A stretch of DNA of 64,000 bases from Macrostomum lignano (lineage: Eukaryota). The stretch spans positions 62,001-126,000 of the forward strand of contig NIVC01000822.1 in assembly GCA_002269645.1 (NCBI GenBank), written 5' to 3'. Shown here piece after piece: positions 1,901 to 64,000 of this stretch (positions are counted from its first letter, which is position 1; the number at the start of each line of letters is the position of its first letter). A program made the translations under genes and the position numbers. The notes under the pieces were generated by a model. The model did not search any database. It was not told the DNA's origin and saw nothing but the letters and a program-made list of their open reading frames with translations.

Positions 1901-2149
1901 GGGATTGGACTCAGAAGATGCTGAGTCCAGTGTGGATGGGAGCGGACTCAGAGGGAGCTCACTTCAATATTTTATAAGTGACCCTCTGGCATCAGTGAAC
2001 TTTTTTGGGTTAAACGAGATGGTTGCGCACTCAGGACTTAAGTAGGATTATGCATTCAAAAAATTAATGAGTTTGGTGTGCATCCAGGAAAGTGGGTGTG
2101 CATTCAGAACTGAAGTGCTGCCCATTCAGTAATGAATTAGGTTGTAAAT

Positions 2150-11346: not shown

Positions 11347-11890
11347 CGAATACCAGTTCGCAAGGAGTCCCTCGGAGACAGCCGCTGCTCTGTCGGCAAC
11401 CAGCTCCTGCAGTTTCAGCTGCAGGAACTGCTGCCAATTTTCGATGGTGTTGTCGGCCTCGTGAACACCCAGACGACGGCCGTGGCCGAACAGCGCCATG
11501 TAGGGATAATGCGGCACTGCCTGTTTGCTGCAAGTGTCCGGCTGGCTTTCGCAGTTCACCTGACCCAGCGCCACGCCCAGCCGCTTGGCCAACGGAGCCA
11601 GCTGAGGGAACAGCGGCTTCAGCAGTTTGCAATGCGGGCACCAGTCTGTGAAGAATTTCACAAATACCGGCCCGCCAGCAGTGAGTGAGTCGAAGTTCGC
11701 GTCCGTCAGTTCCATCACGCCATCCAGCATTAGTGGTGGGGATGCGGCAGTATCGCCAAAGGCTTCTGCCTCGACAGCGGGTACCGTGGAACCGAGCATC
11801 GCCTTGCCCAGGAAGCTCAGCAGCGTGCTGGCAGTTCGGCGACCACGAAACACCTGCGGCTGCTGCGAGCCACGCTGGTGGAATCTGATG
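11347..11890 (-). CDS. TXNDC5-like exon: end of Trx domain 1 plus Trx domain 2 (WCPHC)
   Basis: cccgcag|C ATC AGA TTC gives YPSIRFHQRG..VFRGRRTA; ELTDANF..FVKFFTDWCPHC; donor TCG|gtgagg. Confidence 0.9.
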
Positions 11891-18300: not shown

Positions 18301-19148
18301 ACAAAGTGGGTCATGGCACTCCGACAGACCTTCGCGAAGTGGCCAGTCTTGCCGCACTTGTGGCACGTAACCTTCAGAGCCCGGCAGTCTGTCGGTCGGC
18401 GATGTGGCGCCTGGCCGCATCGCTGGCAGCTCTGGCCTCCACTGGCCGTGGGCCTCACCATCTCCGCCGCGTTCACGCTGTTGGCACCTGCAGAACTTTC
18501 TTCTGGCACCTCCTGGCTAGCGGACAGCGCCTGATGCACCGCCGAGTCCACTTCAGCTTGTTCGGAGGCGGTCAGTGGCCCAGACGAAAATTTGCTCACC
18601 ATTTGAAGTTGCTGCACGTACTCGGTGATCTGACTCACAGAGAGCTCTGCCGAGACTTCGCGCTCGAGGACCTTGCTCCGAAGCTCCTGGTTGCTGAGGT
18701 CGGCGATGAGACGCATTTTGATCAGTTGCTCAGCTCGATCGACGTTCTCGCCCTTCAGCTTTTCGAATTCGCACACTACTGCCTGCTCTTGAAGTCAGGC
18801 AGCAAAGCCGGCAACCGTCTCGCCCTCTCCTTGGCGCATGGACATGAAAGCCGCTCTCTCGGCAATCAGCAGCCTCTTCTTGGGTTCCAGAAACCGCACG
18901 AGGCACTCCTTGATTTCCGCCCACTTCATCTGCGAGAGCGGTTTGGGCGCAACCAGCTGTTTCACTTTGATGAGCTGTGCCACACCAAGGCAGCCAAGGA
19001 AGGCATCGGTCAACGCCAGATTGCCGGCTGTGTCATCAGTGCGATCGTTGTCCTTCACTCCTTTTGCCTGGGCGTCGAAGACTTCGATCCATGACCGCAA
19101 CTCTTCAATGTTGTTGAGAGGCAGTGGGTCTCGTAGCTTTATGGACAT
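15340..19148 (-). pseudogene. Disrupted gag-pol of the Gypsy element
   Basis: ATG at 19148; in-frame TGA at 18795-18797; frameshift near 17515 after YYQVPL; RT motif reads YQEY instead of YxDD; further stop at 17125 and later shifts. Confidence 0.9.
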
Positions 19149-28626: not shown

Positions 28627-30704
28627 TTTATTTATTTTCGTGGAACTGAACGTGGAACTGAAAATCCGGTCATAACAATGTGTGTGGCAGGCGGGTTGCC
28701 ACGGATAACACTTGAATTTGGCGTTTGAACATTTTTGCATGGTGCATGCGGTGACTCCTAATTTTTGGGGTGACGTCACTCCTGTGGCGGGATTTGTCTA
28801 TAACCCGTTTCATGCGTATATTCGCACGCAACGGGATTTGCTTATCCATTTTTGTTATACTAATGTATTCCATGCCGCCCTGCATTATGCCCTCTGGCGT
28901 GTATTTTCTTTCCCGGTGCATGTCCATCCTGAGTCCCCGCTGCGTGTCCATGTATTCCTCTGTATATAATGCGATGATTTTTCATGACTATTTTTTAGTG
29001 GTTTTTGTTTTTTGTTTTGCTTTTAGTTTAGTTTTGGTTCATGCTCTCATCCCCTCGTTTCGTATTTGCCAGCTTTTGTGTTTTCCTGGGTTATTGATTT
29101 ATTCATTAATTCAGTGCTCCATTTGCTAGCGTAAGACAGTTAATACCTTCTATTTTCGGCCTTGCCCCCCCCCCCGTGTTCGTCTGAGTAGAGTCGAGTC
29201 TTAAGTAACATTTAATAATTCTGCTCACTAAAACTTAATAAATTCCAATAATTAACTATATTTATTCACTAATCCAAAGCCATAGTATCTCTTGAATTAT
29301 TTGCCCGTGGGGCGTAAAATAACCAAAGTTCTCATCTCAAAGAAAGCTCTGAGACTTATTCGTTCCGTAATACGTAAATTACGGTGGTGGCAGCAACTAC
29401 CCTACTGAAAGTAACGAGTTCAGATAATCGACGCATTAATTTTAGAGTCAGAAATCTCCGGTGTTTCACCGCTTTGAACGACCGCGCCGCTAACGACCGC
29501 TCCGCTACGATTACGACTACCCTTCCCCCGGACTTGAGAACCCGGCTGTCGGAGTAAAACAGGAGAAGAAATTTCGATCGTTGTGATTCGTCTGCGCGTT
29601 TTCCCGGTTTTATTCGTGCGAACTCAACGCCGGCGGCAATTCAAACGAGGAATCCGCCCCACCTCACTGGTGTCAGCAAATTCAAAAAGCAACCGTTCCA
29701 AGAAAAATCTTCTCCACCCCCACCTCAAATGCAGTATTTGATTGCAGAAAAAACTATTTGTTTTAGGATTAACACGGAATAAATACCTTTATTTGTTATA
29801 TTCAATATTGTTATTATTTTTCTTATTTTAGTTTTCTTTATGACAATTATATTATCATTATTTTATTATTATTATTACTAATACCACTTATTATTCACCG
29901 AGTTTTATGTTTTGAAGTAAAAACTTTACTTTGAAGTAAAAAAATGATAAAAACTTAACTTAACAGACAACGTATTCTGAAATGTCTTCAGTTATAGTCC
30001 AATTTGTTTTAATGTGTAGCGCTTGCGAGAGGGTACCCACGTGTTTTAGGGAGAGCCCTGGCAACAAATCTAACTTTAAAGTCGTTGAAAAGATAAACAA
30101 AATTTAAAAGCCACTAACAGCTGCTAACCATCTATCTGAAACTAAGCTAATCGGATGATAGCATAAAGAATTGTAACTATTTTCTATACTTCTGCGCTTC
30201 TCTGCCATATCTCGTTGCTATTGATCTTCAGTTAAACGGACGATATTTGTTGCTTTCTATATTAAAAAAATAGTTTAGGGATGAAGTGAAAATGAAAAAA
30301 CAAAAGAAATTTCTGTGCACTTTCAGCTTCAGCACCGAGTTACATGTATATACACATGTAGATCTCCAGTCTCCAGTTTGAAATGGACGCGAACATGTAC
30401 ACATGCATGTGTACACGTACGACTTAAAAAATTAAAGCTGTTTTAATTTAATCTTGCGAGAAAAAAAATGGCGGGCTGTTTCATCTATTACATCTACTGT
30501 GCGAACTATTCACATGGCAAAAGAGGTTGGGTAGCATTTTTAGCTAAAGCTATAAATTTACATATACATGTACAATTTGAGATGCTGGAGGCCCTAATAA
30601 AAAGAAAGCTGATGAAATTCATAGCTGCTTTAATTACTCGATCGTTCAGTGCGTAAATGTTTCGAAGACAGACTGACGCACACATACACAATATCCTGAA
30701 ACAG

Positions 30705-31502
30705 TTATTCAGAGTTGCATGTCGACAGGCCGTGAAATGTTCGGAGTCTTCTGAGACCGCTGGTCACAGGATGAGGGTCCCAAGCAGGTTGTGTCTGATT
30801 TGTTAGCCGCCCGCGCTGCCTCCGTCGCAAAGCCGTAGCCCCAGAGCGTTCTACCGGGTCTGCAGGGGTCGGGCAGCCCGGCGGAGAGAACCGGAGTCCC
30901 AACCCGGCCACCGCAGCCGTTTCACCGCAGCCAGCTACAGTGGACGATTCCCCACCAGGTTTCATTAGACCGATGGAGAAGTCCGGAAGCTGTGACTGCC
31001 ATCTCCAGACCGCTTCGCTGAAGCTGATTCCGTCAACGCCACGGCGGAGGCGCCGGCTTTGCCGCGAACGCACTGTGACTGATGCTGCGGCGGCCTCATT
31101 GCTTGCTTCGTGTATCTCTATCAGTTTCTTCTCTGTCTCACCAAGACAGTCGCAACCGGCAATGTCTTTACCTGGTGCAAGTCGCCGAAGCGCTGGCAGC
31201 CGCTGCTGTCTTATCATTGCTGCCGCAGCTATCTCCGCTGAAGCCGGCGGCTGCAGAAATGGACTCGGATGGAGATGCCGTCGCTTAGGCTTCGGTGGCG
31301 GTGGTGGTGGCGGCTGGGGAGGCCGGGTGTCCTCGAAAAGGGGGCACAAAACACCGCGGAGATCGGCGAAGCTGGTGGTGGCCTCCCTGCGGAACTGTAG
31401 CAGCTGTAGCTCGTTGCAGGCTGAATTCAGCTCGCGCAGGTGAAGGCAGTTCAGCTGCCGCCGTTTCACGAGCTGCCGCACCGAGTCCTTCTCGGTGTGC
31501 AT
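30705..31502 (-). CDS. Uncharacterised 265-aa ORF with a poly-Pro tract
   Basis: GC-rich island with an ATG-started ORF and composition like neighbouring exons; no recognisable domain. Confidence 0.45.
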   Translation of the reverse strand: MHTEKDSVRQLVKRRQLNCLHLRELNSACNELQLLQFRREATTSFADLRGVLCPLFEDTRPPQPPPPPPPKPKRRHLHPSPFLQPPASAEIAAAAMIRQQRLPALRRLAPGKDIAGCDCLGETEKKLIEIHEASNEAAAASVTVRSRQSRRLRRGVDGISFSEAVWRWQSQLPDFSIGLMKPGGESSTVAGCGETAAVAGLGLRFSPPGCPTPADPVERSGATALRRRQRGRLTNQTQPAWDPHPVTSGLRRLRTFHGLSTCNSE

Positions 31503-33311
31503 TGCACTGCAGCACTTAGCTTGCTATGCGTCTGTAGGTCTCTAAGGCCGCTCGGAATAATCTGAATAAATCTTCTGTTCACTAACCCGTCTTATTTAGC
31601 CACTCTTGCTAGCTCAACTGCCACACAATTGAGGTGCATGGGTGTGCGGTGGTTTGCTAACCCCGCTGCGCAGCTCACACTTATTATTATACCCTCGCAT
31701 CTACACCCAGACCGGAACAGCAACAAAAGGTTGGAAGAGCAAGCGGCCTCACCCCATAAAGATTAAATCATACCATCACCCCTCCTGCGGAGCAGACAAT
31801 TACTGTTAAGGTTGGCTCTAGTGCAGTGCTATACTATGCTCATGCTCATTTCCAGCCTGCACTGTCTATAAATACTGACACGGACTGCGTCTTTTAACCA
31901 GTGCACGACGTGTACTGGATTAATACCCACAATAATACCACTGTGGCAGCTATGATTATTATACAAAATGAAAATATGAACATTGAATATCAAAATATGA
32001 ACATTGGGCCTGCCTCTTATTGAAAGCAATTACATTTTTTGTGCATTTTTTCGAAAAATCCTACCTACTAAAATTTCCAAGAAACGAGGTTTCCTGTCCT
32101 TCTATTTAAGTCGTACTTCATACATTAACTGAAAGATTAAGAGAAATTGAAGCTGAGGGAGAAAAAAATTTGGTATTTGACGAAATGCCGTTTCTCGATC
32201 GTTGTAGCGCATCCGTGAATGAACAGCGTCGGCAGCACATGTACCGAAGTTGGGTACTGTTAGAACTGTGCACAGGTTGGGGAAGGCAGACAGACAATTT
32301 GGAGCGTTCGATACGCGTGACTTTTCTCACTACGTGAGAAAACCCGATCACAGCAGGTACAGTCGGACACTCAAACTCGAACATCTCCAACGCGCTGCAG
32401 GCCAGCGTGCGCCACGTCGATTTTCTGTTCCAGCGATGTGTCCAAAGTCTCGAGTACATTTACAGTAGCAAGAAGACGGTCTTGACCTTTGCCTGAACCT
32501 GCAAGCACGAAATAAGTAAGACATCGTAAGACATCGTAAGACATCGTAAGACATCGTACAAGTACGGACATGTACAACAGTGTTGCCCTTACTCCAAACG
32601 GAAGCAAGTCATTGCAGGCAAGTACGCGGCAAACCAAACCACCGAGATAAGCTACGCTCGTACTGACGTGGAATACAATACTTGTGAGGGGATTGTCGAG
32701 TGACGTTGAAATGTCGTTGAAACCTACATGCATCATCACAATGATATTCTTTATTCTTAGGAAGGATTCAGAAAACTATTAGACGCAGTCACAATTCGTA
32801 ACAAACTCCAAGAAATCTCGGTTCCTTTGGAGCACCCAGAGAGCTGTTACGAGACAATTGTGCTCAGTTCATCAAACCAGCCAGAATAGATTCCTGGACT
32901 CATTAATGTAGCTGAAATGAGTTTACAAGAAGAAAGCACGGATATGAATCCGGATTAAGACGCTGCCTTAGCGCAGTGCAATCAGAGCAACACAATTTAG
33001 AAAACGCAATGCACTTTTATTTTTGCCTCCGGGCTGCAATAGTAACACAAGATTAAAAACACTGTACAGATTCGCTGCCACAGTGAGCAGCAGCCCAGTC
33101 CATTAACTGTACTCAGATACACAACCAGACTCAGAAACCGCGGGCTTAAGATTGCTACACTTCATACCAGTTAACAAACCCGCTCTGGCCGTTGACTGTT
33201 TCTGTCTTGGTGGCTTCGAATGACAGAATGTCGGACAATAATTCAGGTGAAAATTAAACCAATCAGAGCACACAAAGATGCAGTTAATGAACAGGGAGAA
33301 AGGCATGTCAG

Positions 33312-34041
33312 TCACTGGGTGAGGTCACCGGCTTCCCACAGCTCCTGCTCGTACAGGTCTGCCCGAACCTCCCTGCCGCCGAAGAAGCGACCAGCCATAG
33401 CACGGCAGGCAGCCTCAGCCCCAGCCGAGTCCTCGAACTCAACGAACACCCGCACGGAGTCCGCCTGCTCAAGGATGACCACCCGCTGGACGCTGCCAAA
33501 CTTGGCGCACTCGGCGGACACTTCGGACTCCAGGTCTTCGTCCAAATCCTGCGGCGTGACCATGTTGCGCAGCAGGAGCACCCTGGGTGGTGCGGCCCGC
33601 ATCATCAGCTTCCGCATCACCAGCCGCCTAGCCTCCTGGCCCCTGATGAAGTCGTTCTCGTGCTCAACGCTTTCCGGTTGTTGGCCCAGCATCGCATCAT
33701 CCTCCATTAGCTGCTGCTGCTGCCTCTCAGTCATCCCCGCCGCTGCTGCAGCCGCCATTGCAGCTGCGACAGGCGGAGGAGGCGCCAGAGCTGCAGCTGC
33801 CTGCGATACCTGCGGCTGTTCCGATTGCTGCTGCGATACCTGCGGCTGCTGGTTCTGGGTCTGCTGCTGCTGCTGCTGTTGCTGTTGCTGGGGGGCCGAA
33901 GGTGCAGATGAACTGAGCTCTGCGGGACCCACAGCCCGCTGTGCCATGAGCTGGGCAGTGATGTTGGCAGCTGCAACGGCAGCCGCCGCGGGCAGGGCGG
34001 ATGGAGGGGCGGAAACCGGCACAACGGGCGGAGTGATGGCC
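33312..34041 (-). CDS. PUF60: PUF60 exon 4 (Ala/Gln-rich linker plus UHM domain); spliced CDS totals 537 aa
   Basis: RAITPP, AAAVAAANITAQ, LLLRNMV..DEDLESEVSAECAKFG..RFFGGREV; all four exons are phase-consistent; AATAAA at 33016-33021. Confidence 0.95.
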
Positions 34042-34485
34042 CTGGTGGATCGAGTAGGTGGTTTAATTAAATAGTCGACTAAGCTGCAGCACAAGTTTTC
34101 TTTCAGCACCAAAACATAAATTGCGCTAAATGACACCGACTTTAAATTGGATATGGAATAAACAAGCTTTTGCATCAATTTTAGGCTGGCTGAAAGTAAG
34201 GAACTCAAGGAAGGTTTAGAAGGCTGGCTTTACGCTCGAATTGTAGGAATTTTTGCGCAATTTTGCAGCTTACTTGTGAACTAAGCGGTATTTCACAATT
34301 GCCAACAATGCCATATATTCTACTACAGTTTCCCCTATTCTAGAGTAGAACTAATTCTAGAGCTGGGTAGTTAGCCATTTCCCCAGGACTCTTTCAATTG
34401 AAATGCTTCTGCACATACAGGTAGATAATGGATAAGAATGAAATGCGGAATATCGAAGCATCGAACCGGCAAGTCTCAGACTGAC

Positions 34486-34804
34486 CTGCCAACCTTGAGC
34501 AGCTGCCCGCCAAGGTCAAATCCATGCATCGCACTAATGGCCTCGATGGCAGACTCCGGGGTGGAGTACTCTATGAAGCCGAAGCCGCGGTGAACGCCGG
34601 GCACGGTGGGGTCGGGCTCCAGCTTGCAGCTCACCAGCGAGCCGAAAGCCTCAAACACGGAGCGCAGCTCGAACTCGGTGAGCTGCGGGTGCACGTTGGC
34701 CACGTAAACGCGGCTGTACAGCGACCCCTCACGCACCAGCTCGTCGATCACCGGGTTTGGATTCGAAATGTTCGATGGCCGACTCACCTTTAGGTTGCGA
34801 CCTC
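34486..34804 (-). CDS. PUF60: PUF60 exon 3 (linker plus RRM2)
   Basis: GGRNLKVSRPSNI..RVYVANVH..RGFGFIEY..FDLGGQLLKVGR; cccgcag| and GGCAG|gtcagt. Confidence 0.95.
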
Positions 34805-34877
34805 CTGCGGGATGAGCACCGGAGGAACAGGTAAAATTGAATTTAATTTAACACCAACAGTGTATGCACACATATCA

Positions 34878-36214
34878 CAGTGCACTCTGACTCCACCAAA
34901 TAAATTCATGACACAGTGCACTCTGACTCCACCAAATAAACTCATGACACAGTGCACTCTGACTCCTCACCAAATAAATTCATGACACAGTGCACTCTGA
35001 CTCCTCACCAAATAAACTCATGACACAGTGCACTCTGACTCCACCAAATAAACTCATGACACAGTGCACTCTGACTCCTCACCAAATAAACTCATGACAC
35101 AGTGCACTCTGACTCCACCAAATAAATTCATGACACAGTGCACTCTGACGCCTCACCAAATAAATTCATGACACAGTGCACTCTGACTCCTCACCAAATA
35201 AACTCATGACACAGTGCACTCTGACTCCTCACCAAATAAATTCATGACACAGTGCACTCTGACTCCTCACCAAATAAACTCATGACACAGTGCACTCTGA
35301 CTCCACCAAATAAATTCATGACACAGTGCACTCTGACTCCACCAAATAAACTCATGACACAGTGCACTCTGACTCCTCACCAAATAAATTCATGACACAG
35401 TGCACTCTGACGCCTCACCAAATAAACTCATGACACAGTGCACTCTGACTCCACCAAATAAACTCATATCACAGTGCACTCTGACTCCTCACCAAATAAA
35501 TTCATGACACAGTGCACTCTGACTCCTCACCAAATAAATTCATGACACAGTGCACTCTGACTCCACCAAATAAACTCATGACACAGTGCACTCTGACTCC
35601 TCACCAAATAAATTCATGACACAGTGCACTCTGACTCCACCAAATAAATTCATGACACAGTGCACTCTGACTCCTCACCAAATAAACTCATGACACAGTG
35701 CACTCTGACTCCTCACCAAATAAACTCATGACACAGTGCACTCTGACTCCTCACCAAATAAACTCATGACACAGTGCACTCTGACTCCTCACCAAATAAA
35801 CTCATGACACAGTGCACTCTGACTCCACCAAATAAACTCATGACACAGTGCACTCTGACTCCACCAAATAAATTCATGACACAGTGCACTCTGACTCCAC
35901 CAAATAAATTCATGACACAGTGCACTCTGACTCCTCACCAAATAAATTCATGACACAGTGCACTCTGACTCCTCACCAAATAAACTCATGACACAGTGCA
36001 CTCTGACTCCTCACCAAATAAACTCATGACACAGTGCACTCTGACTCCTCACCAAATAAACTCATGACACAGTGCACTCTGACTCCTCACCAAATAAACT
36101 CATGACACAGTGCACTCTGACTCCTCACCAAATAAACTCATGACACAGTGCACTCGGACTCCTCACCAAATAAACTCATGACACAGTGCACTACAGTGCA
36201 CTCCGACTCCTCAC
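34878..36214. repeat. 36/38-bp minisatellite filling PUF60 intron 2; the unit contains the 5' splice site
   Basis: Sense unit AGAGTGCACTGTGTCATGAGTTTATTTG|GTGAGGAGTC, about 36 copies starting at the true donor. Confidence 0.95.
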
Positions 36215-36458
36215 CAATGGTATATCCATTCATGCCGTCAATGGCCAGTGTGGCTGCCTCGGCAAGCTCGAACTCAACGAATGCATAGCCTTTGTGTTTG
36301 CGGGTGGCGTTGTCGAAACCCATGTTGCAGGCCTTTACTGTGCCGTAGGTTTGGAAGGCGGCAGTCAGCATCTCCTCCGTGACGTCAGCGGCAATGCTGC
36401 CCACGTAAATTCTGCTGAGCAGCAACAGAGCCTGAGCTCGCTTCACTTGCTGAACTTG
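36215..36458 (-). CDS. PUF60: PUF60 exon 2 (RRM1)
   Basis: RAQAL..SRIYVGSI..KHKGYAFVEFE; ttgtag| and ATTG|gtgagg. Confidence 0.95.
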
Positions 36459-36860
36459 CTACAAGGGGAAGTGTTGCTCATTCAATAATTATTGATCAAT
36501 GACGATTGTGACAGAGCGGGATAGAATTCAGGTGTGGTCATATCTCTCTGGGGTAGCAATACTCAGTCACAGCATGGGGGTTTCCTCGTTCAACACGAGG
36601 GCCAAACCCGAACACCCTAAATTGTAAAAGTGTATATGGCCTGACTTTGAATAATTCAGACACCTGTGAATGTGCGCATGTATACCCGCGCTAGTGTGTC
36701 TGCCACAATTGCCTTCCCAGCGGCTGTGGGACGATGTCACAGAATGCATTGTCCACAGCACTTGAATAGTGCAAACTAACAAATCCTAAGTTTTAAACGC
36801 CTTTTCAATCAAATAGCACTCATGAATTGAAAGCAGTAATGAAGCAAGCACTCTACCCAC

Positions 36861-37181
36861 CGCGCGGTGATGCTTCTCCTGCATCTGGTGCATGATGAAC
36901 TTGACACTTTGCTCCTTGGCGAATCGTTTGGCTCGCCGGACATAGTCTTCACAGCGGCGCGACTGCAGCTCTGGAATGATGCACAGCGCCATCAGAGGCC
37001 TCTGGTGACCGGAGCCTTCTGTGAGATCGCCCGTTTGCTCATATGTTGCCATAGAAACAGGAGCTGGGCCAGGCGCGCTCTCGAAGAAAATGGTGTCTGG
37101 TCGGCCATCTGTCCAGGCCGAGTTCGAGTTGGAGGGGCTTGACTGGCCGGACATGCTGTGGCTGTTGGGCCGGCCGAACAT
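36861..37181 (-). CDS. PUF60: PUF60/half-pint exon 1
   Basis: YEQTGDLTEGSG..RRAKRFAKEQSVKFIMHQ resembles the PUF60/Hfp N-terminal AKKYAMEQSIK region; donor GCG|gtgggt. Confidence 0.8.
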
Positions 37182-46697: not shown

Positions 46698-47663
46698 ATG
46701 TCGAGTCGGGTCTCTCGCATCGTCCTGATGACGGTGACCACAGCCCTCATGCTCGTCACCTTCGCCTTCAACTTCCTGAGCTTCTCTCCGCTGGGCCGCA
46801 GTCTGGGCATCTTCTCCAACTCTAGCGGCAGCGTGTGGGACAACCGCAACAACCTGACCCAGAGCGGCCTGAACCCGCCCGAGTACGCCTTCGGTGTGTG
46901 GGGCTTCATCTACCTGTACCAGGTGTGCATGCTGGCTTACTGCTGGAGCCTGCTGTTCCGCAGCACCAGCCGAGGCCAGCCGCTGTGCTGCGTGCCTGGC
47001 CTGCTGCCCGTGGGCTACCTGGTCTGCCACTCGCTCAGCAGCGTCTTCAACACCGCCTTCGTCCTGCTGGCCGGCAGAACTGACCGCAAGTACTTTCTTA
47101 TCGTCCTGATCTTCGTGATGCTCGCGCTGGCCGTGTCGCTCAGCGTCGGAGTGATCATCTCCATCCGCCAGCTGTGGCTGGGAAGGCTCCGGCTACAGCA
47201 GGAGGGCCTGCTGCCGCACTACTGGCTGGTCATCGGCCTGCAGCAGAACGCCTGCGGCTTCTACGCCGGCTGGGCGTGGATCGCCCTCTTCATCAACATC
47301 GACAACGCCATCATCAACCTGGCCGACTGGCCAGTCACCAGCAGCTCGCTGCTGTGCCTCTGTCAGCTGTTCGCGCTGCTGGCCGCCTACGTCACCGCCG
47401 ACCTGTCCATCCTGGACCCCCACCTGCGCTTCTTCTTCGGGCCCTACCTGACCCTGCTGTGGGCCGTGGCCACAGGCGTCGGCGCCAGCTACAGCCCGGC
47501 CTCGGCTGTGACCAAAGTCACTCTGGAGCTGGCGGTCGCCCTGGCGCTGGTCATCATCGTCAAGTCGGTTCTGGCCGTCATCAGGCAGAAGAGGAATCCA
47601 CTGCCGATGCCCGGCAGTGGCCACGGCGGCGCGTATGACGGGAGCTTCGAGAAGGCTTCTTAG
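46698..47663 (+). CDS. Intronless multi-pass (about 8 TM) TSPO/TspO-MBR-related membrane protein, paralog A (321 aa)
   Basis: NPPEYAFGVWGFIY and FYAGWAWIALFIN resemble TSPO PPxWxFxxVWxxLY and YxxWxxxAxxLN; upstream pyrimidine tract plus CAG acceptor-like site near 46670; AATAAA near 47711. Confidence 0.85.
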   Translation: MSSRVSRIVLMTVTTALMLVTFAFNFLSFSPLGRSLGIFSNSSGSVWDNRNNLTQSGLNPPEYAFGVWGFIYLYQVCMLAYCWSLLFRSTSRGQPLCCVPGLLPVGYLVCHSLSSVFNTAFVLLAGRTDRKYFLIVLIFVMLALAVSLSVGVIISIRQLWLGRLRLQQEGLLPHYWLVIGLQQNACGFYAGWAWIALFINIDNAIINLADWPVTSSSLLCLCQLFALLAAYVTADLSILDPHLRFFFGPYLTLLWAVATGVGASYSPASAVTKVTLELAVALALVIIVKSVLAVIRQKRNPLPMPGSGHGGAYDGSFEKAS

Positions 47664-48009
47664 ATCAGCTGCGAGTGCAGCCGGATCTGGCTTTTTTTTA
47701 AAAATCACTGAAATAAACACGAATTTTCTCTTGGTTATCTAACTGTAGATTACAGACCTATCCACACTGTGTAGCTGGTGTCTTTAATATTAACTGCACT
47801 TGCACTTGCAATCTTTGTCTTACAAACACCGCTTTGTCCTAAAAAGCGAAATATATATGTATATAATTTAACAGGTTCTTTATGAACGTATTGTCCAAAA
47901 CTAAATGTTTCAGACTGCGTTACTTTTAAGTTATTGATTTTTTTAAATCTCATCTCTCCCTACTCTTTCCCATCTGTTCACATCCTCTCGTGTCCTCTCT
48001 CCTCCTGAA

Positions 48010-48490
48010 GACAGGTGAATGAAAGACAGAAAGCTAGTTGATAACAGGTGAATGAAAGACGAGAAGCTTGTTGATGACAGGTGAATGACAGACAGAAAGC
48101 TTTAGTTGATAACAGGTGAATGAAAGACGAGAAGCTTGTTGATGACAGGTGAATGACAGACAGAAAGCTATTGTTGATAACAGGTGAATGACAGACAGAA
48201 AGATAGTTGATAACAGGTGAATGACAGACGAGAAGCTTCTTGATGACAGGTGAATGACAAACATAATGCTAGTTGATAACAGGTGAATGAAAGACGAGAA
48301 GCTTGTTGATGACAGGTGAATGACAGACAAAAAGCTAGTTGCTAAAAGGTGAATGACAGACAGAAAGCTAGTTGATGACAGGTGAATGAAAGACGAGAAG
48401 CTTGTTGATGACAGGTGAATAACAGACAGAATGCTAGTTGATGACAGTTAAATGAGACAGAAAGCTGATTGATGACAGGTGAATGACAGG
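48010..48490. repeat. About 33-bp minisatellite (GACAGGTGAATGACAGACAGAAAGCTAGTTGAT)
   Basis: About 14 units with two alternating variants. Confidence 0.9.
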
Positions 48491-48989
48491 CGGAAATCAA
48501 TGACCTGTCATGATTATGGCATGACACATAAAGGTGTATTTTGCGCTGCTTTTAGAGCACAGAGTGAACTCTATAATACACTAACTATTATCACTTCTCA
48601 ACCCTGCAGAGCTGAATTGTTTCTGGCTATTAGACAGCAAGCGAAAATAAATTTAAAGATGCGCTTGCACTTAGAGAGCTGCCTCCAACAAGGAAAGCCG
48701 AAGAAATCTAAAGAACAAAAATAAGGCCTATTTTTAGCGCCAGCAGAGAACGAATGGCGTGGACGGCCAGATTTGAATTGTAATTACACTTTTCTCGCTG
48801 AGAGCCTGCATTAGATGGGCACTCTGTGGATGCGTGCTGCGAGGCCTCACCCACTCTGCACTCCCTGCCCCTTTAGCTGCGCGGGCCGTGTGACCAAGCG
48901 AATCGTTGTTTCAATAATAAGGCCCCCGAGGACTGCTCAAGGCCCCACCCCACTCCCAGAGAATGAGCCACGCGCTCCGTGCAGTTGAG

Positions 48990-49021
48990 TATAAATACGG
49001 AGGGCGCCTCTCGACTCAGTC
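48990..49021 (+). promoter_or_regulatory. TATA box plus Inr core promoter of paralog B
   Basis: TATAAATA at 48990 and TCAGTC with A at 49018 (28-nt spacing), 46 nt before the ATG. Confidence 0.7.
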
Positions 49022-49063
49022 GTTTTTCACCTACCCAATTTCGGAGCCAAGCCCAACGCAAAC

Positions 49064-50032
49064 ATGGTCCACCAAGCCGTGCAGATCACTCTGGTGGCTC
49101 TGACCACTATCATGCTGGTGCTCACGCTGCTGTTCAACTACTTCAGCACCTCGGAGGTTGGCTACAGGCTGGGCCTGTTCTCCATCAACAGCGCCACCCC
49201 GTGGACTCAGCGCGCCAACCTCACCAAGAGCAACCTGACCCCGCCTGGCTGGGCCTTCACCGTCTGGGCGGTGATCTACGTGTACCAGGGCGTGATGCTG
49301 GCGTACTGCTGGAGCCTGCTGTTCATCAAGAACGCGGCCGGCGAGCCACTGTGCTGCGTGCCCGGCCTCCTGCCTGTGGGCTTCCTGATCTGCCACATGA
49401 TCAGCAGCGGCTTCAACATCGCCTGGATATTTGTCACGGACAAGGTGGAGTACAACAAGTACAACCTCATCCCGCAGACCATCATGCTCTTCCTGCTAGC
49501 CATCTCCCTGTGGGCCTGCCTGATCTTCTCCTTCAACCGGCTGTCGGCCCACAAGATAGAGCTGCGGCAGCAGGGCCTACGGCTGCACTACTGGCTGGTC
49601 ATCGGCCTGATGCAGAACTCCTGCGGTTTCTACGTCGGCTGGACCTGCATCGCCAGCTTCCTCAATCTGGACATCGCCATCGTCAACATCACCGGCTACA
49701 CGGCGGCTACCAGCTCCCTGCTGGCCCTATGCCAGTTCTGCGGCCTCCTTGGCGCCTACATCACCGCCGACTTCTCCTTCCTGGACCCCTTCCTGCGCTT
49801 CTTCATCGCGCCCTACCTCACCCTCATCTGGGCCTTAGCCACCTCCGTTGCCGGCAACTATGCGGCCGGCTCCGTCACCTCAGATCTGACGGTGGAGCTG
49901 ACGGCTGCTCTGATTGCCGCCCTCATTGTGAAGGTGGTTCTGGCCATTGTGAGACAGAAGCGCGACCCACTGCCGGACAGCACCTCCAGCAGCCGCATCA
50001 TGGACAGCAAGGAGGCGGCCACGCCAAATTAA
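49064..50032 (+). CDS. Intronless TSPO/TspO-MBR-related membrane protein, paralog B (322 aa)
   Basis: TPPGWAFTVWAVIY, QNSCGFYVGWTCIASFLN; colinear with paralog A over the full length. Confidence 0.85.
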   Translation: MVHQAVQITLVALTTIMLVLTLLFNYFSTSEVGYRLGLFSINSATPWTQRANLTKSNLTPPGWAFTVWAVIYVYQGVMLAYCWSLLFIKNAAGEPLCCVPGLLPVGFLICHMISSGFNIAWIFVTDKVEYNKYNLIPQTIMLFLLAISLWACLIFSFNRLSAHKIELRQQGLRLHYWLVIGLMQNSCGFYVGWTCIASFLNLDIAIVNITGYTAATSSLLALCQFCGLLGAYITADFSFLDPFLRFFIAPYLTLIWALATSVAGNYAAGSVTSDLTVELTAALIAALIVKVVLAIVRQKRDPLPDSTSSSRIMDSKEAATPN

Positions 50033-50107
50033 GGCTGTGTTAGGGGAGTGACAGATTCAGGCTGAGTGCTTTACTTGACAGGAAATATTGACAGGTGACG
50101 GGTGAAG

Positions 50108-50500
50108 CACACGAGACAGGAGACAATCAGACAGGTGGAGAACACATGAGACAGGAGACAATCAGACAGGTGGAGAACGCATGAGACAGGAGACAATCAG
50201 ACAGGTGGAGAACACATGAGACAGGAGACAATCAGACAGGTGGAGAACACATGAGACAGGAGACAATCAGACAGGTGGAGAACGCATGAGACAGGAGACA
50301 ATCAGACAGGTGGAGAACGCATGAGACAGGAGACAATCAGACAGGTGGAGAACACATGAGACAGGAGACAATCAGACAGGTGGAGAACACATGAGACAGG
50401 AGACAATCAGACAGGTAGAGAACACATGAGACTGGAGTGAGTCAGACAGGCAGAGAACATGAGACTGGAGTCAGTCAGACAGGCAGAGAACATGAGACTA
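50108..50500. repeat. 35-bp minisatellite (ACATGAGACAGGAGACAATCAGACAGGTGGAGAAC)
   Basis: About 11 units just 3' of paralog B. Confidence 0.9.
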
Positions 50501-51543
50501 TTATAGAGTAGATTACCTGGGTCGTTCTCAAATTCTGGTAGGAGCGAAAATTTTAACAATTTTCCGAACATTTACTATTGTTACTGCCGTATTGAAAACA
50601 ATATGACACTTTCATCTGTGAATAAAGATATTTTTGGGTTGAAATTTATGTTGCAAAAGTGTTTTAAGTTATCTTGTGGTATTAGGCGATATTAGGCGAT
50701 GAAAAAAATTCAAATTCAACCACTTCATTGATGTTCTGATTTTTTACACTATGATGTCTGTAACTTAAAAAAGTTGTTTTTGTGTTGAAAACTTGCTATA
50801 TTACATTAAAAACGAAATGTTTTATAAATTTAATTTAGGAAATTTTTCAAAGACATGTAAACTGCACTTTAAACGATTTTATAGACGCTTAACTGTATGC
50901 CTAGCATTCCCAGTGGTACAGCCACTCTGCGTCTCACGAAATGTTTTTTGGCTGATGCCTAGAATGAGTGCTTAAAATGATACATTTTGATACAGATGAT
51001 TAGAAAAACATGTATTAGTTTCTTTTTGTAAAAAACTTTCATGAAGTAGAGCACTAATTGTTGATAAAAAAAATTAAAAGCTACCATGAATCGTATAGAA
51101 CCCTACTTTGAAGCACAAGATAAATTTTCTTGTAACCACACTAGCTTTCTCCATGGAGCACCTTTTGAGCCGAGATTTTGAGCAGAGAGCAACCACTTCA
51201 GCAGGATCGTCCTTTGCCACCGCATCCTTCGAAATGGCATCGATTTATTGAGCAGGCAGCGAGCCAGCAACATGTGAGATTTTTGCTTCCATGAGTTTAG
51301 TTCTATTAGTTCCATTTTTAATAGATAACAAGTATAATTAGTCTTTGACCAGGGGTGTCGGACCACTTTTTAGCATGATCCCGCAAATGCCATTTTCTTT
51401 GAATTTTAAACAAGTGTTGGCCGGTTTTGGGCTTTGGCTTTTCTGGGTCTTTTTGAGGTTTTTCTGAGGGTACATTAAAAATGTTAAAAGTGTTAAAATT
51501 AAAAATGGTCATTACCCTCAATCGGGGTATGTGGACATATAAT

Positions 51544-53718
51544 CAGGGGCGTAGGCAGGAATTTCTCACGGCGGAGAATGCAAGGATATGAGTAGCTGCT
51601 GCTATTTGTACTTGCTGGCCCAATGGCAGTTCACAGGAAAATTAAGTGCCATAAATCAAATACGTAGGTGCTAGGTAGCTATGAACGGCCAGTCATATTT
51701 CCAATTCTATAAAAATGTCACAATTTAGTTAAAAAATTAGAAAATAATTCCTTCTACTGAATGCTTTATAGTAAATGAAAATCGTTTTTGACTTGCTGCA
51801 CTAGCATGCACTATGTGTCGCGACTTTCCTAGTCATTTCTTTAGTTCACCTTCACTTGTCTCTGTTTACTCTGTTTTCTCTCTCTCTCTGTGTCTAGCTC
51901 AATCTTGTTATTCTTATCTCTCTCTCTCCCTTGCTGCCTTCTGATTGGTTCTCCATTCTCGCCTCTCTCTTCAGTCGCGCACTTCACCCCTCTCCTTATT
52001 ATCTGGAGTCAACCCCCCTCTAAATTAGTCATATAAATATACTTGTTTGGGCCCTGCGCCCACTTACTGGCGTATCTTAGTATTCAATTTAACATCTAAT
52101 TTAGTTCTAGTGTTTTTAGTCTTATTTTCTCTACATGGCGCCCAATGAAAAATAATTCAGTCAATACAGTAAGGCTGGCAAAGGCCATGCCATCGTCGTT
52201 GTCGTAGCCCTACACCAGTCATCTCGTCATCCCGTCATCGACTCCTAATCGTCTCGTCTCTGCTTGCCGGCCTCTCAATCGTCTCGTTGCCGGCCTCTCA
52301 ATCGTCTCCTCTCTGGTTGCCGGCCTCAATCGTCTCGTCTCTGCTTGCCGGCTTCTCAATCGTCTCGTCTACCGGCCTCTCAATCGTCTCGTCTCTGGTT
52401 GCCGGCCTCTCAATCGTCTCGTTGCCGGCCTCTCAATCGTCTCGTTGCCGGCCTCTCAATCGTCTCGTTGCCGGCCTCTCAATCGTCTCGTCTCTGGTTG
52501 CCGGCCTCAATCGTCTCGTCTCTGGTTGCCGGCCTCTCAATCGTCTCGTCTCTGGTTGCCGGCCTCTCAATCGTCTCGTCTCTGGTTGCCGGCCTCTCAA
52601 TCGTCTCGTCTGCCGGCCTCTCAATCGTCTCATCTCTGGTTGCCGGTCTCGTCTTCGGAGTCGGTGCCGGCAGCATATTCACATTTCAACTCGGGCTGTC
52701 GGTCTCGTCTTCGGAGTCGGTGCCGGCAGCATATTCGCATTTCAACTCGGGCTGTCGGTCTCGTCTTCGGAGTCGGTGCCGGCGGCATATTCACAATTCA
52801 ACTCGGGCCGTCGTCACGTCTTCGGAGTCGGTGTCGGCAGTCAATCTCACCGGTCTTTGTCAAACTTTCTTCACTCGGTCCCCTCCTCTCTTGTCAGTGT
52901 CTCCAGTTGTCTCTAGTCGTCTCCAGTTGTTCTTTTCATCAACTTGATTCTCATCTCATCTCATCTCTCTCATCTCAGCTCTCTTACTCAACTGACAATG
53001 TTAATGTTTTCTCTAAACTGTACTAGCCATTTACAATTAAAAATTGCTAATTTTTAAGGGGAGGGTGGATATATTCAGTCTTTTCAGTCTTCTCATTGGT
53101 TCAAAAACTACTCAATAAAAATCTAAGTTTAAAATTCGGTCTTAATATTTTGCATTCGCTCTACTGTTTTTGTATTCAAATTCTTAGTCATTATGTATTT
53201 TTCAAATCGTTTTATACACCATTTATTGTGAATGTGTTTTTCAATTTAATTCGACCTAATTCTAACTCATTAATTTCAATTGGTAATGGTACTCGAAAAT
53301 TCAAAAAATGTTCCATTTTTTGGGGGGAGTGTCGCGACTTTCCTAGTCATTTCTTTAGTTCACCTTCACTTGTCTCTGTTTACTCTGTTTTCTCTCTCTC
53401 TCTGTGTCTAGCTCAATCTTGTTATTCTTATCTCTCTCTCTCCCTTGCTGCCTTCTGATTGGTTCTCCATTCTCGCCTCTCTCTTCAGTCGCGCACTTCA
53501 CCCCTCTCCTTATTATCTGGAGTCAACCCCCCTCTAAATTAGTCATATAAATATACTTGTTTGGGCCCTGCGCCCACTTACTGGCGTATCTTAGTATTCA
53601 ATTTAACATCTAATTTAGTTCTAGTGTTTTTAGTCTTATTTTCTCTACACTATGCTTTCCTAATTTCTTACACCCACCGAGGGGATACATCCCCATACCC
53701 CCCTTGCCTACGCCACTG
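51544..53718. mobile_element. hAT MITE (about 336 bp when empty) interrupted by an LTR element
   Basis: TIR CAGGGGCGTAGGCAGG / CCTTGCCTACGCCACTG; perfect 8-bp TSD CATATAAT. Confidence 0.85.
51816..53649 (+). mobile_element. Recent non-autonomous LTR retroelement (1834 bp, TRIM/LARD-like)
   Basis: Two 320-bp LTRs (51816-52135, 53330-53649) identical by eye, TG...CA ends, PBS TGGCGCCCAA, PPT GGGGGGAG, 5-bp TSD CTATG; interior of tandem repeats, no gag/pol motifs. Confidence 0.95.
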
Positions 53719-59878: not shown

Positions 59879-62800
59879 TTACAAGATACATGTGTAAAAA
59901 AACATGTAGAAAGATACATGTGTAAAGATACTTATGTGTAAAGATGTATGTGCAAAGATACATGTAGAAAGATTACATGTGTAAAGATACTTATGTGTAA
60001 AGATACTTATGTGTAAAGATGTATGTGCAAAGATACATGTAGAAAGATTACATGTGTAAAGATACTTATGTGTAAAGATGTATGTGCAAAGATACATGTA
60101 GAAAGATTACATGTGTAAAGATACTTATGTGTAAAGATACATGTGTAAAGATACATGTGTAAGGATACTTATGTGTAAAGATACATGTGTAAAGATACAT
60201 GTGTAAAGATACATGTGCAAAGATACATGTAGAAAGATTACATGTGTAAAGATACTTATGTGTAAAGATGTATGTGCAAAGATACATGTAGAAAGATTAC
60301 ATGTGTAAAGATACTTATGTGTAAAGATACATGTGTAAAGATACATGTGTAAGGATACTTATGTGTAAAGATACATGTGTAAAGATACATGTGTAAAGAT
60401 ACTTATGTGTAAAGATACATGTGTAAAGATACATGTGTAAAGATACATGTGTAAAGATACTTATGTGTAAAGATGTATGTGTAAAGATACATGTAGAAAG
60501 ATTACATGTGTAAAGATACTTATGTGTAAAGATACATGTGTAAAGATACATGTGTAAGGATACTTATGTGTAAAGATACATGTGTAAAGATACGTGTAAA
60601 GATACTTATGTGTAAAGATACTTATGTGTAAAGATACTTATGTGTAAAGATACTTATGTGTAAAGATACATGTGTAAAGATACATGTGTAAGGATACTTA
60701 TGTGTAAAGATACATGTGTAAAGATACATGTGTAAAGATACGTGTAAAGATACTTATGTGTAAAGATACTTATGTGTAAAGATACTTATGTGTAAAGATA
60801 CTTATGTGTAAAGATATATGTGTAAAGATACATGTCTAAAGATACATGTGTAAAGATACATGTGTAAAGATACATGTGTAAAGATACATGTGTAAAGATA
60901 CTTATGTGTAAAGATGTATGTGTAAAGATACACGTAGAAAGATTACATGTGTAAAGATACTTATGTGTAAAGATACTTATGTGTAAAGATACTTATGTGT
61001 AAAGATACATGTGTAAAGATACTTATGTGTAAAGATGTATGTGTAAAGATACATGTAGAAAGATTACATGTGTAAAGATACTTATGTGTAAAGATACTTA
61101 TGTGTAAAGATACATGTGTAAAGATACATGTGTAAAGATACTTATGTGTAAAGATACTTATGTGTAAAGATACATGTGTAAAGATACTTATGTGTAAAGA
61201 TACTTATGTGTAAAGATGTATGTGTAAAGATACATGTAGAAAGATTACATGTGTAAAGATACTTATGTGTAAAGATACTTATGTGTAAAGATACTTATGT
61301 GTAAAGATACTTATGTGTAAAGATACATGTGTAAAGATACTTATGTGTAAAGATACTTATGTGTAAAGATATATGTGTAAAGATACATGTGTAAAGATAC
61401 TTATGTGTAAAGATACTTATGTGTAAAGATACATGTGTAAAGATACATGTGTAAAGATACTTATGTGTAAAGATACTTATGTGTAAAGATACTTATGTGT
61501 AAAGATACATGTGTAAAGATACTTATGTGTAAAGATGTATGTGTAAAGATACACGTAGAAAGATTACATGTGTAAAGATACTTATGTGTAAAGATACTTA
61601 TGTGTAAAGATATATGTGTAAAGATACATGTGTAAAGATACTTATGTGTAAAGATACTTATGTGTAAAGATACATGTGTAAAGATACTTATGTGTAAAGA
61701 TACATGTGTAAAGATACATGTGTAAAGATACATGTGTAAAGATACATGTGTAAAGATACATGTGTAAAGATACATTTGTAAAGATACATGTGTAAAGATA
61801 CATGTGTAAAGATACATGTGTAAAGATACTTATGTGTAAAGATGTATGTGTAAAGATACATGTAGAAAGATTACATGTGTAAAGATACTTATGTGTAAAG
61901 ATACATGTGTAAAGATACTTATGTGTAAAGATACTTATGTGTAAAGATACATGTGTAAAGATACTTATGTGTAAAGATGTATGTGTAAAGATACATGTAG
62001 AAAGATTACATGTGTAAAGATACTTATGTGTAAAGATACATGTGTAAAGATACATGTGTAAGGATACTTATGTGTAAAGATACATGTGTAAAGATACATG
62101 TGTAAAGATACATGTGTAAAGATACTTATGTGTAAAGATACATGTGTAAAGATACATGTGTAAAGATACTTATGTGTAAAGATACATGTGTAAAGATACA
62201 TGTGTAAGGATACTTATGTGTAAAGATACATGTGTAAAGATACATCTGTAAAGATACATGTGTAAAGATACTTATGTGTAAAGATACATGTGTAAAGATA
62301 CTTATGTGTAAAGATATATGTGTAAAGATACATGTGTAAAGATACTTATGTGTAAAGATACATGTGTAATGATACATGTGTAAAGATACATGTGTAAAGA
62401 TACATGTGTAAAGATACATGTGTAAAGATACTTATGTGTAAAGATGTATGTGTAAAGATACACGTAGAAAGATTACATGTGTAAAGATACTTATGTGTAA
62501 AGATACTTATGTGTAAAGATACATGTGTAAAGATACTTATGTGTAAAGATACTTATGTGTAAAGATACATGTGTAAAGATACTTATGTGTAAAGATACTT
62601 ATGTGTAAAGATGTATGTGTAAAGATACATGTAGAAAGATTACATGTGTAAAGATACTTATGTGTAAAGATACTTATGTGTAAAGATACTTATGTGTAAA
62701 GATACTTATGTGTAAAGATACATGTGTAAAGATACTTATGTGTAAAGATACTTATGTGTAAAGATATATGTGTAAAGATACATGTGTAAAGATACTTATG

Positions 62801-64000
62801 TGTAAAGATACTTATGTGTAAAGATACATGTGTAAAGATACATGTGTAAAGATACTTATGTGTAAAGATACTTATGTGTAAAGATACTTATGTGTAAAGA
62901 TACATGTGTAAAGATACTTATGTGTAAAGATGTATGTGTAAAGATACACGTAGAAAGATTACATGTGTAAAGATACTTATGTGTAAAGATACTTATGTGT
63001 AAAGATATATGTGTAAAGATACATGTGTAAAGATACTTATGTGTAAAGATACTTATGTGTAAAGATGTATGTGCAAAGATTACATGTGTAAAGATACTTA
63101 TGTGTAAAGATACTTATGTGTAAAGATACATGTGTAAAGATACATGTGTAAAGATACTTATGTGTAAAGATACTTATGTGTAAAGATACATGTGTAAAGA
63201 TACTTATGTGTAAAGATACTTATGTGTAAAGATGTATGTGTAAAGATACATGTAGAAAGATTACATGTGTAAAGATACTTATGTGTAAAGATACTTATGT
63301 GTAAAGATACTTATGTGTAAAGATACTTATGTGTAAAGATACATGTGTAAAGATACTTATGTGTAAAGATACTTATGTGTAAAGATATATGTGTAAAGAT
63401 ACATGTGTAAAGATACTTATGTGTAAAGATACTTATGTGTAAAGATACATGTGTAAAGATACATGTGTAAAGATACTTATGTGTAAAGATACTTATGTGT
63501 AAAGATACTTATGTGTAAAGATACATGTGTAAAGATACTTATGTGTAAAGATGTATGTGTAAAGATACACGTAGAAAGATTACATGTGTAAAGATACTTA
63601 TGTGTAAAGATACTTATGTGTAAAGATATATGTGTAAAGATACATGTGTAAAGATACTTATGTGTAAAGATACTTATGTGTAAAGATACATGTGTAAAGA
63701 TACTTATGTGTAAAGATACATGTGTAAAGATACATGTGTAAAGATACATGTGTAAAGATACATGTGTAAAGATACATGTGTAAAGATACATTTGTAAAGA
63801 TACATGTGTAAAGATACATGTGTAAAGATACATGTGTAAAGATACATGTGTAAAGATACTTATGTGTAAAGATGTATGTGTAAAGATACATGTAGAAAGA
63901 TTACATGTGTAAAGATACTTATGTGTAAAGATACATGTGTAAAGATACTTATGTGTAAAGATACTTATGTGTAAAGATACATGTGTAAAGATACTTATGT
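59879..64000. repeat. AT-rich satellite of interspersed 14-bp (GTAAAGATACATGT) and 16-bp (GTAAAGATACTTATGT) units
   Basis: More than 4 kb, runs off the window end; the ORFs here are repeat artefacts. Confidence 0.97.

Follow-up and report, generated by a model that had tools for sequence, protein, structure and literature searches.

A tandem pair of intronless, eight-helix relatives of TSPO in the flatworm Macrostomum lignano belongs to an unnamed bilaterian protein family

The stretch of DNA analysed here, in the following referred to as the window, comprises 64,000 nucleotides (positions 62,001 to 126,000 of the forward strand) and is identical to contig NIVC01000822.1 of the Macrostomum lignano assembly GCA_002269645.1. 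It contains two neighbouring open reading frames (ORFs), designated paralogue A and paralogue B, which are predicted to encode membrane proteins remotely related to TSPO, the porphyrin- and sterol-binding protein of the TspO/MBR family. Coordinates refer to the window throughout, and paralogue B served as the reference for the structure model and for residue numbering. The two genes and their main regions are as follows:

46698-47663, + strand: ORF A (paralogue A), ATG start, 321 amino acids (aa), single-exon coding sequence (CDS), TSPO-like protein with eight transmembrane (TM) helices, the faster-evolving copy
46800-47309, + strand: TSPO-homologous core of A, approximately residues 35-204, located by the colinearity of A and B and the alignment of B to TSPO
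49064-50032, + strand: ORF B (paralogue B), ATG start, 322 aa, single-exon CDS, TSPO-like protein with eight TM helices, the conservative copy
49166-49678, + strand: TSPO-homologous core of B, residues 35-205, loop 1 and TM2-TM5, aligned by hhalign to residues 21-155 of human TSPO with 96% probability and E=3.8e-9
49694-49963, + strand: C-terminal extension of B, TM6-TM8, residues 211-300, family-specific, with the motif LDxxxRFxxxPY in a predicted cytosolic loop

The CDS of both paralogues are uninterrupted, and the encoded proteins are colinear, sharing 51% identity and 69% positives over 304 aa with a single gap (BLASTP, E=4e-111). The preliminary description of this DNA, which had been made from the sequence alone, had placed two intact, colinear and intronless ORFs of 321 and 322 aa at exactly these coordinates and had estimated them to be about half identical, in agreement with our results. 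The sequence motifs it had pointed out are likewise present: PPEY in paralogue A stands against PPGW in paralogue B, and PLCCVPGLLPVG and GFYxGWxxIAxFxN are common to both.

The coding sequences of A and B have a GC content of 0.61-0.64, rising to 0.89-0.91 at third codon positions (GC3), compared with 0.30-0.33 in the adjoining intergenic DNA; the remaining coding regions of the window are as GC-rich as A and B. Several long ORFs overlapping the two genes (47174-47638, 47193-47720, 48979-50043 and others) represent alternative-frame artefacts of this GC-rich coding sequence. The exact protein of paralogue A corresponds to an annotated gene call on NIVC01000822.1. The public gene call at paralogue B (49036-50043, 335 aa) is out of frame and gives a low-complexity sequence rich in P, R, H and G (QFRSQAQRKHGPP...). 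The exact protein of B is missing from the protein collection, whereas the twin of B on another contig (P0001, 98% identical) has a correct annotation. The out-of-frame call is probably due to an error in the annotation.

A word-indexed protein search with A and B returned only Macrostomum paralogues. An exhaustive hidden Markov model (HMM) search with the alignment of the paralogues detected at least 501 representative clusters at E<=1e-3, 225 of them at E<=1e-10, with most members being 300-340 aa long and matching end to end with E-values between 1e-44 and 1e-14. Inspection of the 501 clusters covered ranks 1-150, and the taxonomic distribution was taken from the named matches. Every named member is a protein of a bilaterian animal and is labelled 'uncharacterized' or 'hypothetical'. 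They originate from nemerteans (Tubulanus, Lineus), annelids (Capitella, Owenia), molluscs (Octopus, Haliotis, Patella, Nucella, Sinanodonta, Physella, Elysia), the hemichordate Ptychodera, the fish Stigmatopora, a copepod, the springtail Allacma and Macrostomum itself; examples are Octopus sinensis LOC115221323, Tubulanus polymorphus LOC141907356, Capitella teleta CAPTEDRAFT_226481, Stigmatopora nigra LOC144209888 and Ptychodera flava XP_070574947.

The family is characterised by the motifs ITPAGWTFSIWGxIY, NIxWLFLWDR, VQNGLxxYATWxxIATLLN and LDRYTRYxxTPY. Both A and B match its members colinearly over their full length and carry the corresponding signatures (ITPAGW.F.IW..IY; N..W....D; QN....Y..W..IA..LN; LD...R(Y/F)...PY). 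In 48 non-Macrostomum members 53 columns are at least 70% conserved, of which B retains 34 and A 30; of the 12 columns with a conservation of at least 90% in the same members, B retains 11 and A 10. A and B are members of an unnamed bilaterian family of eight-helix proteins of about 300 aa. A dedicated Pfam model for this family does not exist and a literature search for a long TSPO-like family found no paper, so that its earlier designation as uncharacterised holds. Such proteins may already be grouped by automated classification in PANTHER PTHR33802 ('si:ch211-161h7.5-related') or in the TspO/MBR-related superfamily of InterPro.

Within the family A, B and a further Macrostomum paralogue, C, are set apart by their lack of introns, by only 21-33% identity to the members from other animals and by the PLCCVPGLLPVG loop. 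The Cys-Cys pair of this loop had been described as a shared feature of A and B, which is correct for the two proteins, but it is specific to Macrostomum rather than a feature of the family: other members have G.LY..P, with Y and L/V at the positions of the cysteines.

The relationship to TSPO was analysed by comparing an alignment of 51 full-length family members, to which all counts out of 51 refer, with an alignment of 30 genuine TSPOs, all of which belong to PF03073 (TspO_MBR) and whose seeds match the structures 4UC1, 4RYI and 2MGY. The two alignments matched in hhalign with a probability of 96% (E=4.3e-9, score 64.6), residues 35/56-205 of B being aligned to residues 21/40-155 of human TSPO, i.e. 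to loop 1 and TM2-TM5; the N-terminal 210 residues alone yielded E=1.6e-9. In the controls a reversed TSPO profile reached a score of 15.7 and a probability of 0.3%, and column-shuffled profiles gave a best score of 27.2 and a best probability of 9.9%. Sequence identity to TSPO amounts to only about 22-23% over 113-133 columns. Among the 51 family members, four matched PF03073 itself at E<=1 (best E=3.6e-6) and one, from Octopus sinensis, exceeded the gathering score of the profile (26.6 vs 24 bits; residues 86-226 corresponding to profile positions 32-143/145). The link of A and B to TSPO is real but remote: by profile both are superfamily homologues of TspO/MBR, yet they lie below the curated threshold for classical TSPOs.

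An AlphaFold2 model of B based on the 51-sequence alignment reached a pLDDT of 93.4 and a pTM of 0.89. This alignment was required, the five Macrostomum sequences alone giving an unusable model with a pLDDT of 50. The model comprises eight helices (residues 4-29, 62-87, 105-126, 132-162, 173-210, 214-237, 249-265 and 271-300), matching the approximately eight TM segments of the preliminary description. In a Foldseek search against the PDB the TSPOs of Bacillus cereus (BcTSPO) and Rhodobacter sphaeroides (RsTSPO) occupied ranks 1-4, 6, 8, 9 and 11 with match probabilities of 0.60-0.99, while all non-TSPO matches had a probability of 0.14 or less. The alignments span the whole TSPO chains with TM-scores of 0.59-0.65 normalised to TSPO length (TMt), the best matches being BcTSPO 4RYI (probability 0.99, TMt 0.64) and RsTSPO 8E7Z/4UC1 (TMt 0.64-0.65); since the Foldseek E-values are poor (0.4-4), the fold match relies on TM-score and rank and is corroborative rather than stand-alone evidence. 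TM1 (residues 4-29 of B) was matched to TSPO by fold only.

The invariant positions of TSPO coincide with the most conserved positions of the family. P44 of human TSPO corresponds to P60 (51/51 members), W53 to W68 (51/51), N92 to N118 (40/51), W95 to W121 (49/51), W143 to W193 (50/51), A147 to A197 (48/51) and N151 to N201 (49/51), with W68, W193 and A197 being present in both A and B. W53 and W143 of human TSPO are equivalent to W51 and W138 of BcTSPO, of which a mutation of the former impairs porphyrin binding and a mutation of the latter abolishes porphyrin degradation, both leaving the TSPO structure undisturbed (PMC10598825).

Based on the profile homology, the fold and the shared invariant residues we conclude that helices 1-5 of A and B represent a true TSPO domain. 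The relatedness to TSPO claimed in the preliminary description has thereby been substantiated by three independent lines of evidence, among them the two comparisons proposed there, with the TspO_MBR profile and with known structures by Foldseek. The fold of helices 1-5 is shared with TSPO in general (PF03073; human TSPO1/2, Rhodobacter sphaeroides TspO, Bacillus cereus TSPO; PDB 2MGY, 4UC1, 4RYI), and the signatures PxxW...W..(I/L)Y at the start of TM2, N..W in TM3 and Y..W..(I/F)A..LN in TM5 are common to both families. In contrast to classical TSPOs, which have about 150-170 aa and exactly five TM helices, A and B are twice as long, contain eight helices, carry N-glycosylation sequons in loop 1 and have no CRAC motif after TM5. 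What is new here is an eight-helix architectural variant of the known TSPO superfamily.

Several residues are conserved in the family only and have no counterpart in TSPO, namely N185 at the start of TM5 (51/51), R245 (48/51) and D236/D241. R245 is part of the family consensus LDRYTRYxxTPY in the TM6-TM8 region. Neither TSPO nor the N-terminal half of the protein shows any recognisable similarity to helices 6-8 (hhalign probability <1%). A partial internal duplication of the TSPO fold, for which the resemblance of 'TPYxVxxWAL' to 'PYLxWxxFA' of TSPO had been considered, was rejected on the basis of these comparisons.

N-x-S/T sequons were detected in loop 1 of 36 of the 51 members, those of B being N52 and N57, and in any other loop of at most 6, and K and R are concentrated in loops 2, 4 and 6 and in the C-terminal tail. 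This pattern suggests that both termini are cytosolic and that loop 1 is N-glycosylated and lies on the lumenal or extracellular side. With this orientation the proteins would be expected in the secretory pathway or at the plasma membrane and not in the mitochondrial outer membrane. A precedent for such a compartment is provided by AtTSPO of Arabidopsis, a protein of TSPO fold encoded by an intronless gene, which is reported to reside in the endoplasmic reticulum and Golgi and not in mitochondria (PMC3003801). AtTSPO differs from A and B in being a canonical five-helix TspO/MBR protein of the classical family which has an N-terminal extension and lacks the added C-terminal helices. On the predicted topology the Cys-Cys loop of the Macrostomum proteins would be cytosolic and juxtamembrane, so that its palmitoylation is conceivable, if speculative.

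A second contig (L006) carries an intact tandem pair with 98% amino-acid identity to A and B, as expected of an assembly in which 180 Mb belong to duplicated blocks that are at least 95% identical (PMC5730564). A comparison of the two contigs shows a difference of 1.2% and no indels in the CDS, as against 2.3-6.0% and many indels in the flanks. The ratio of non-synonymous to synonymous substitution rates (dN/dS) between the contigs, which had been suggested as a check, is 0.24 for A (5 non-synonymous and 7 synonymous substitutions) and 0.33 for B, each value being derived from only 12 substitutions. Both copies are under purifying selection, and the earlier view of an old duplication after which both were retained holds. 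Indirect evidence of expression is provided by the GenBank gene models, which stem from a transcriptome-guided annotation (PMC5730564).

Of the 48 outgroup members, 43-46 resemble paralogue A less closely than they resemble B or C, and the branch of A is the longest of the tree. A alone departs from the family consensus by the changes W63Y, W121F, D126G and T59N. The first of these, the Tyr of PPEY that the preliminary description had pointed out, affects a moderately variable site (W in 38/51), while W121 and D126 are conserved in 49/51 and 41/51 members, respectively; A keeps W68, W193, A197, N201, N185 and R245. The apparent dN/dS of 0.8 between A and B is unreliable due to the GC3 of about 0.9. 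The changes in the putative pocket of A suggest an altered ligand specificity or a partial relaxation of constraint.

Apart from A and B the genome encodes two further paralogue groups. Paralogue C (P0002; L001 10001-10969) is 66% identical to B and is located on two other contigs without a tandem partner. While A, B and C all have a single-exon CDS, paralogue D (P0004) possesses one intron inside the homologous body, after D residue 253 (approximately B residue 138) and in phase 0. The Physella orthologue has five CDS introns at approximately residues 33, 126, 184, 219 and 244, none of which matches the position of the D intron, and the Octopus gene, which extends over about 77 kb, has at least 1-2. 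The mean number of introns per gene in M. lignano is 4.9-5.0 (PMC5730564). In the protein tree all four paralogue groups of Macrostomum fall into a single clade within the members from other animals, with the branching order (D,(A,(B,C))) and 100% bootstrap support. Given the introns in D and Physella and the order of the tree, intronlessness is a derived state of the A/B/C clade. The family has expanded to four paralogue groups in the Macrostomum lineage, the A/B/C clade having lost all introns, which confirms the local expansion proposed earlier.

The combination of an intronless CDS with an intron-bearing paralogue fits an origin by retroposition from a D-like ancestor, after which the copy was duplicated in tandem and dispersed. 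No poly(A) remnant was found, since neither A nor B is followed by an A-rich tract at its 3' end; no systematic search was made for target-site duplications, which would be eroded at this age. Since this hallmark of retroposition is missing, stepwise intron loss is an equally open explanation. The preliminary description had named retroposition as a possible origin, which is compatible with the intron pattern but without the expected poly(A) trace; its reference to intron-rich neighbours applies to at least one gene, the multi-exon RRM-domain gene described below.

The synonymous distance (dS) of 0.54 between A and B, compared with 1.05 between B and C, is at odds with the protein tree, in which B pairs with C. 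At third codon positions A and B show an elevated identity in blocks 31-60, 91-120 and 151-210 (codon numbers). The conflict is possibly caused by the shared extreme GC3, by old gene conversion between the tandem neighbours or by a tree artefact resulting from the acceleration of A. The GC3 of about 0.9 and the conflict with the protein tree make a dating of the duplications by dS unreliable.

Adjacent or near-adjacent locus tags of family members were also observed in Patella caerulea (SNE40_010440/010442) and Elysia crispata (RRG08_013427/013429), and in Tubulanus and Haliotis several family loci are located on one contig. Local gene clusters thus appear to be a recurring feature of the family. 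On the Octopus sinensis sequence CM016876.1 two alternative large 3' exons (L003 66033-66815 and 78872-79654) encode most of the protein. The two copies share 38% amino-acid identity and are used in different annotated isoforms, indicating a diversification by exon duplication rather than by duplication of the whole gene.

The explanation that we favour, and that seems somewhat more likely than not, is that A and B are functional members of a bilaterian family in which a TSPO bundle is extended by three helices and which binds, and possibly processes, a flat hydrophobic ligand. Our best guess is a function in the binding or processing of a hydrophobic ligand, for instance a tetrapyrrole. The proteins would be inserted with both termini in the cytosol and would reside in the secretory pathway or the plasma membrane and not in the mitochondrial outer membrane. 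Loop 1 would be the counterpart of LP1 of TSPO, which helps to maintain the ligand cavity, and would here be lumenal or extracellular and N-glycosylated. The flat hydrophobic ligand would be bound, and possibly oxidatively processed, in the cavity of helices 1-5 as in TSPO, a tetrapyrrole being the most likely candidate and, failing that, a sterol or lipid. The contribution of helices 6-8 would be a surface peculiar to the family with a conserved cytosolic LDRYxRY loop, which may serve in partner binding or stand in for the dimerisation of TSPO. Following the tandem duplication B would have kept the ancestral pocket, while A would have altered three signature residues (W63Y, W121F, D126G).

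A number of observations weigh against this explanation. PF03073 was not matched by A or B even at E<=10 (Pfam), NCBIfam and PDB sequence searches with A and B gave no match, and neither did the family profile when compared with PDB sequences. The homology is seen only at the level of profile-profile comparison and fold, and in the latter the Foldseek E-values are weak. The cholesterol-recognition motif CRAC of mammalian TSPO (L/V-x1-5-Y-x1-5-R/K) is absent after TM5, where LNYCVWRD of TSPO is opposed to LNLDIAIVN of B and TM5 of B runs on to residue 210 past the equivalent position. The conserved tryptophans are located in a helical bundle and could be structural rather than ligand-contacting. 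Furthermore, the predicted topology is derived from sequons and charge only, and the between-contig dN/dS values from few substitutions. Finally, the physiological function of TSPO itself is disputed, with cholesterol transport, porphyrin handling and enzymatic degradation under discussion.

It is possible, though clearly less probable, that A and B are relatives of TSPO by fold only, the TSPO bundle having been reused in, for example, a complex subunit or chaperone, a lipid scramblase or transporter, or a surface receptor, with the Trp, Asn and Ala residues merely holding the helices together. Such a reuse is compatible with the low sequence identity to TSPO, with the three added helices and the residues N185, R245 and D236/D241 that have no TSPO counterpart, and with a predicted orientation and compartment unlike those of mitochondrial TSPO; recurrent clusters and lineage expansions are, moreover, commoner in environment-facing receptor or detoxification families than in housekeeping porphyrin handling. 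However, the positions common to both families line the TSPO cavity and include both functional tryptophans (PMC10598825), and structural constraint alone would not be expected to pick out cavity positions. A different objection concerns paralogue A alone, which might be a decaying or relaxed duplicate on its way to a pseudogene, leaving the family function to B (and C). Considering that its ORF is intact and free of indels on both contigs, that its between-contig dN/dS is 0.24, that the key residues are kept and that it has a gene model in the transcriptome-derived annotation, this seems unlikely, despite the loss of W121, D126, W63 and T59 in A alone, the retention of only 30 of the 53 conserved columns (34-35 in B and C), the lower similarity to the outgroup members and the longest branch; the apparent A-B dN/dS of 0.8, which would also point to decay, is affected by the GC3 bias mentioned above.

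A horizontal acquisition from a bacterium or another non-animal donor, which had been raised in the preliminary description, can be regarded as highly improbable. The idea draws on the missing introns in a genome averaging about five introns per gene (PMC5730564) and on the GC content of A and B, which is well above that of the adjoining intergenic DNA. Yet the other coding regions of the window are equally GC-rich, all named homologues are bilaterian with the Macrostomum clade nested among them (100% bootstrap), and spliceosomal introns are present in relatives including paralogue D. It is just as difficult to believe that the ORFs are chance or otherwise non-functional frames, such as dead retrocopies. 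Although hallmarks of retroposition are absent and the public gene call at B uses another frame, about 320 codons are conserved over the full length with a family of more than 500 clusters, both ORFs are intact on two contigs with a CDS better conserved than the flanks, the structure model is confident, and it is the out-of-frame call that gives low-complexity sequence.

Starting from the favoured explanation, i.e. ligand-binding proteins with a TSPO bundle and three added helices, a more far-reaching proposal can be made, which we consider doubtful and advance tentatively. The family might constitute a second, non-mitochondrial arm of tetrapyrrole or sterol biology, consisting of glycosylated proteins with a TSPO-type cavity that opens to the lumen or exterior and binds or oxidatively degrades porphyrins or related hydrophobic ligands. 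Lineage expansions such as A/B/C/D would then diversify the specificity, the pocket of A having been remodelled. If this were true, the family would offer a genetically tractable non-mitochondrial system for studying what the TSPO fold, that of an important drug and imaging target, does chemically; methods for transgenesis (PMC5730564) and RNA interference exist for M. lignano. The family also represents an independent evolutionary sample of what the TSPO fold is conserved for, as the cavity residues are kept in another architecture and probably another compartment. The locus is, furthermore, a clean case of paralogue evolution, with intron-bearing and intronless copies in one genome and a tandem duplication followed by dispersal. 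With regard to annotation, the label TSPO-like can replace 'hypothetical protein' for members of the family, and the public gene call at B needs to be shifted into the correct frame.

The following minor features were identified around the two genes:

47712-47717, + strand: candidate polyadenylation signal AATAAA, 49 nt after the stop codon of A, read from the sequence
48006-48496, no strand: minisatellite between A and B, 33 bp x 14.8 copies, GACAGGTGA core, Tandem Repeats Finder, also present on the second contig
48990-48997, + strand: candidate TATA box TATAAATA, 67 nt upstream of the ATG of B, read from the sequence
50108-50492, no strand: minisatellite 76 nt downstream of the stop codon of B, 35 bp x 11.1 copies, GACAGGTGG/AGACAGG core, Tandem Repeats Finder

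The candidate TATA box suggests that B may have its own promoter. Over the 528 bp upstream of B the two contigs diverge by only 2.3%, compared with 4-6% in the other flanks. The first AATAAA after B (50621-50626) is located beyond the minisatellite at 50108-50492. Both minisatellites share a GACAGGTG/AGACAG core and both arrays occur on the second contig. A GACAGG-type array follows each of A and B, and no such minisatellite was found at paralogue C (L001). The minisatellites may be part of an old tandem-duplication unit or simply represent a common M. lignano satellite.

Elsewhere in the window, the remnant of a long terminal repeat (LTR) retrotransposon was detected on the - strand (15603-18776), comprising an ORF with a gag zinc knuckle and a retroviral-type aspartyl protease (17283-18776, - strand) and an ORF with integrase zinc-binding and core domains (15603-16616, - strand). 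A multi-exon gene with an RRM domain is located at approximately 30700-37172 (- strand); its product has 534 aa in the public call, and one of its exons corresponds to the ORF 33312-34208. A further ORF (11305-11853, - strand) encodes a thioredoxin domain (E=1e-16). The ORFs of 190-230 aa at 52264-53026 arise from tandem repeats with periods of 30, 56 and 58 bp (52247-52840); no gene has been called there, and the ORFs are regarded as repeat artefacts and not as genes. The two ends of the window (1-4000 and 60001-64000) show a GC skew of +0.35 to +0.53, with a GC content of only 27% in 60001-64000, and probably consist of strand-biased satellite or low-complexity DNA.

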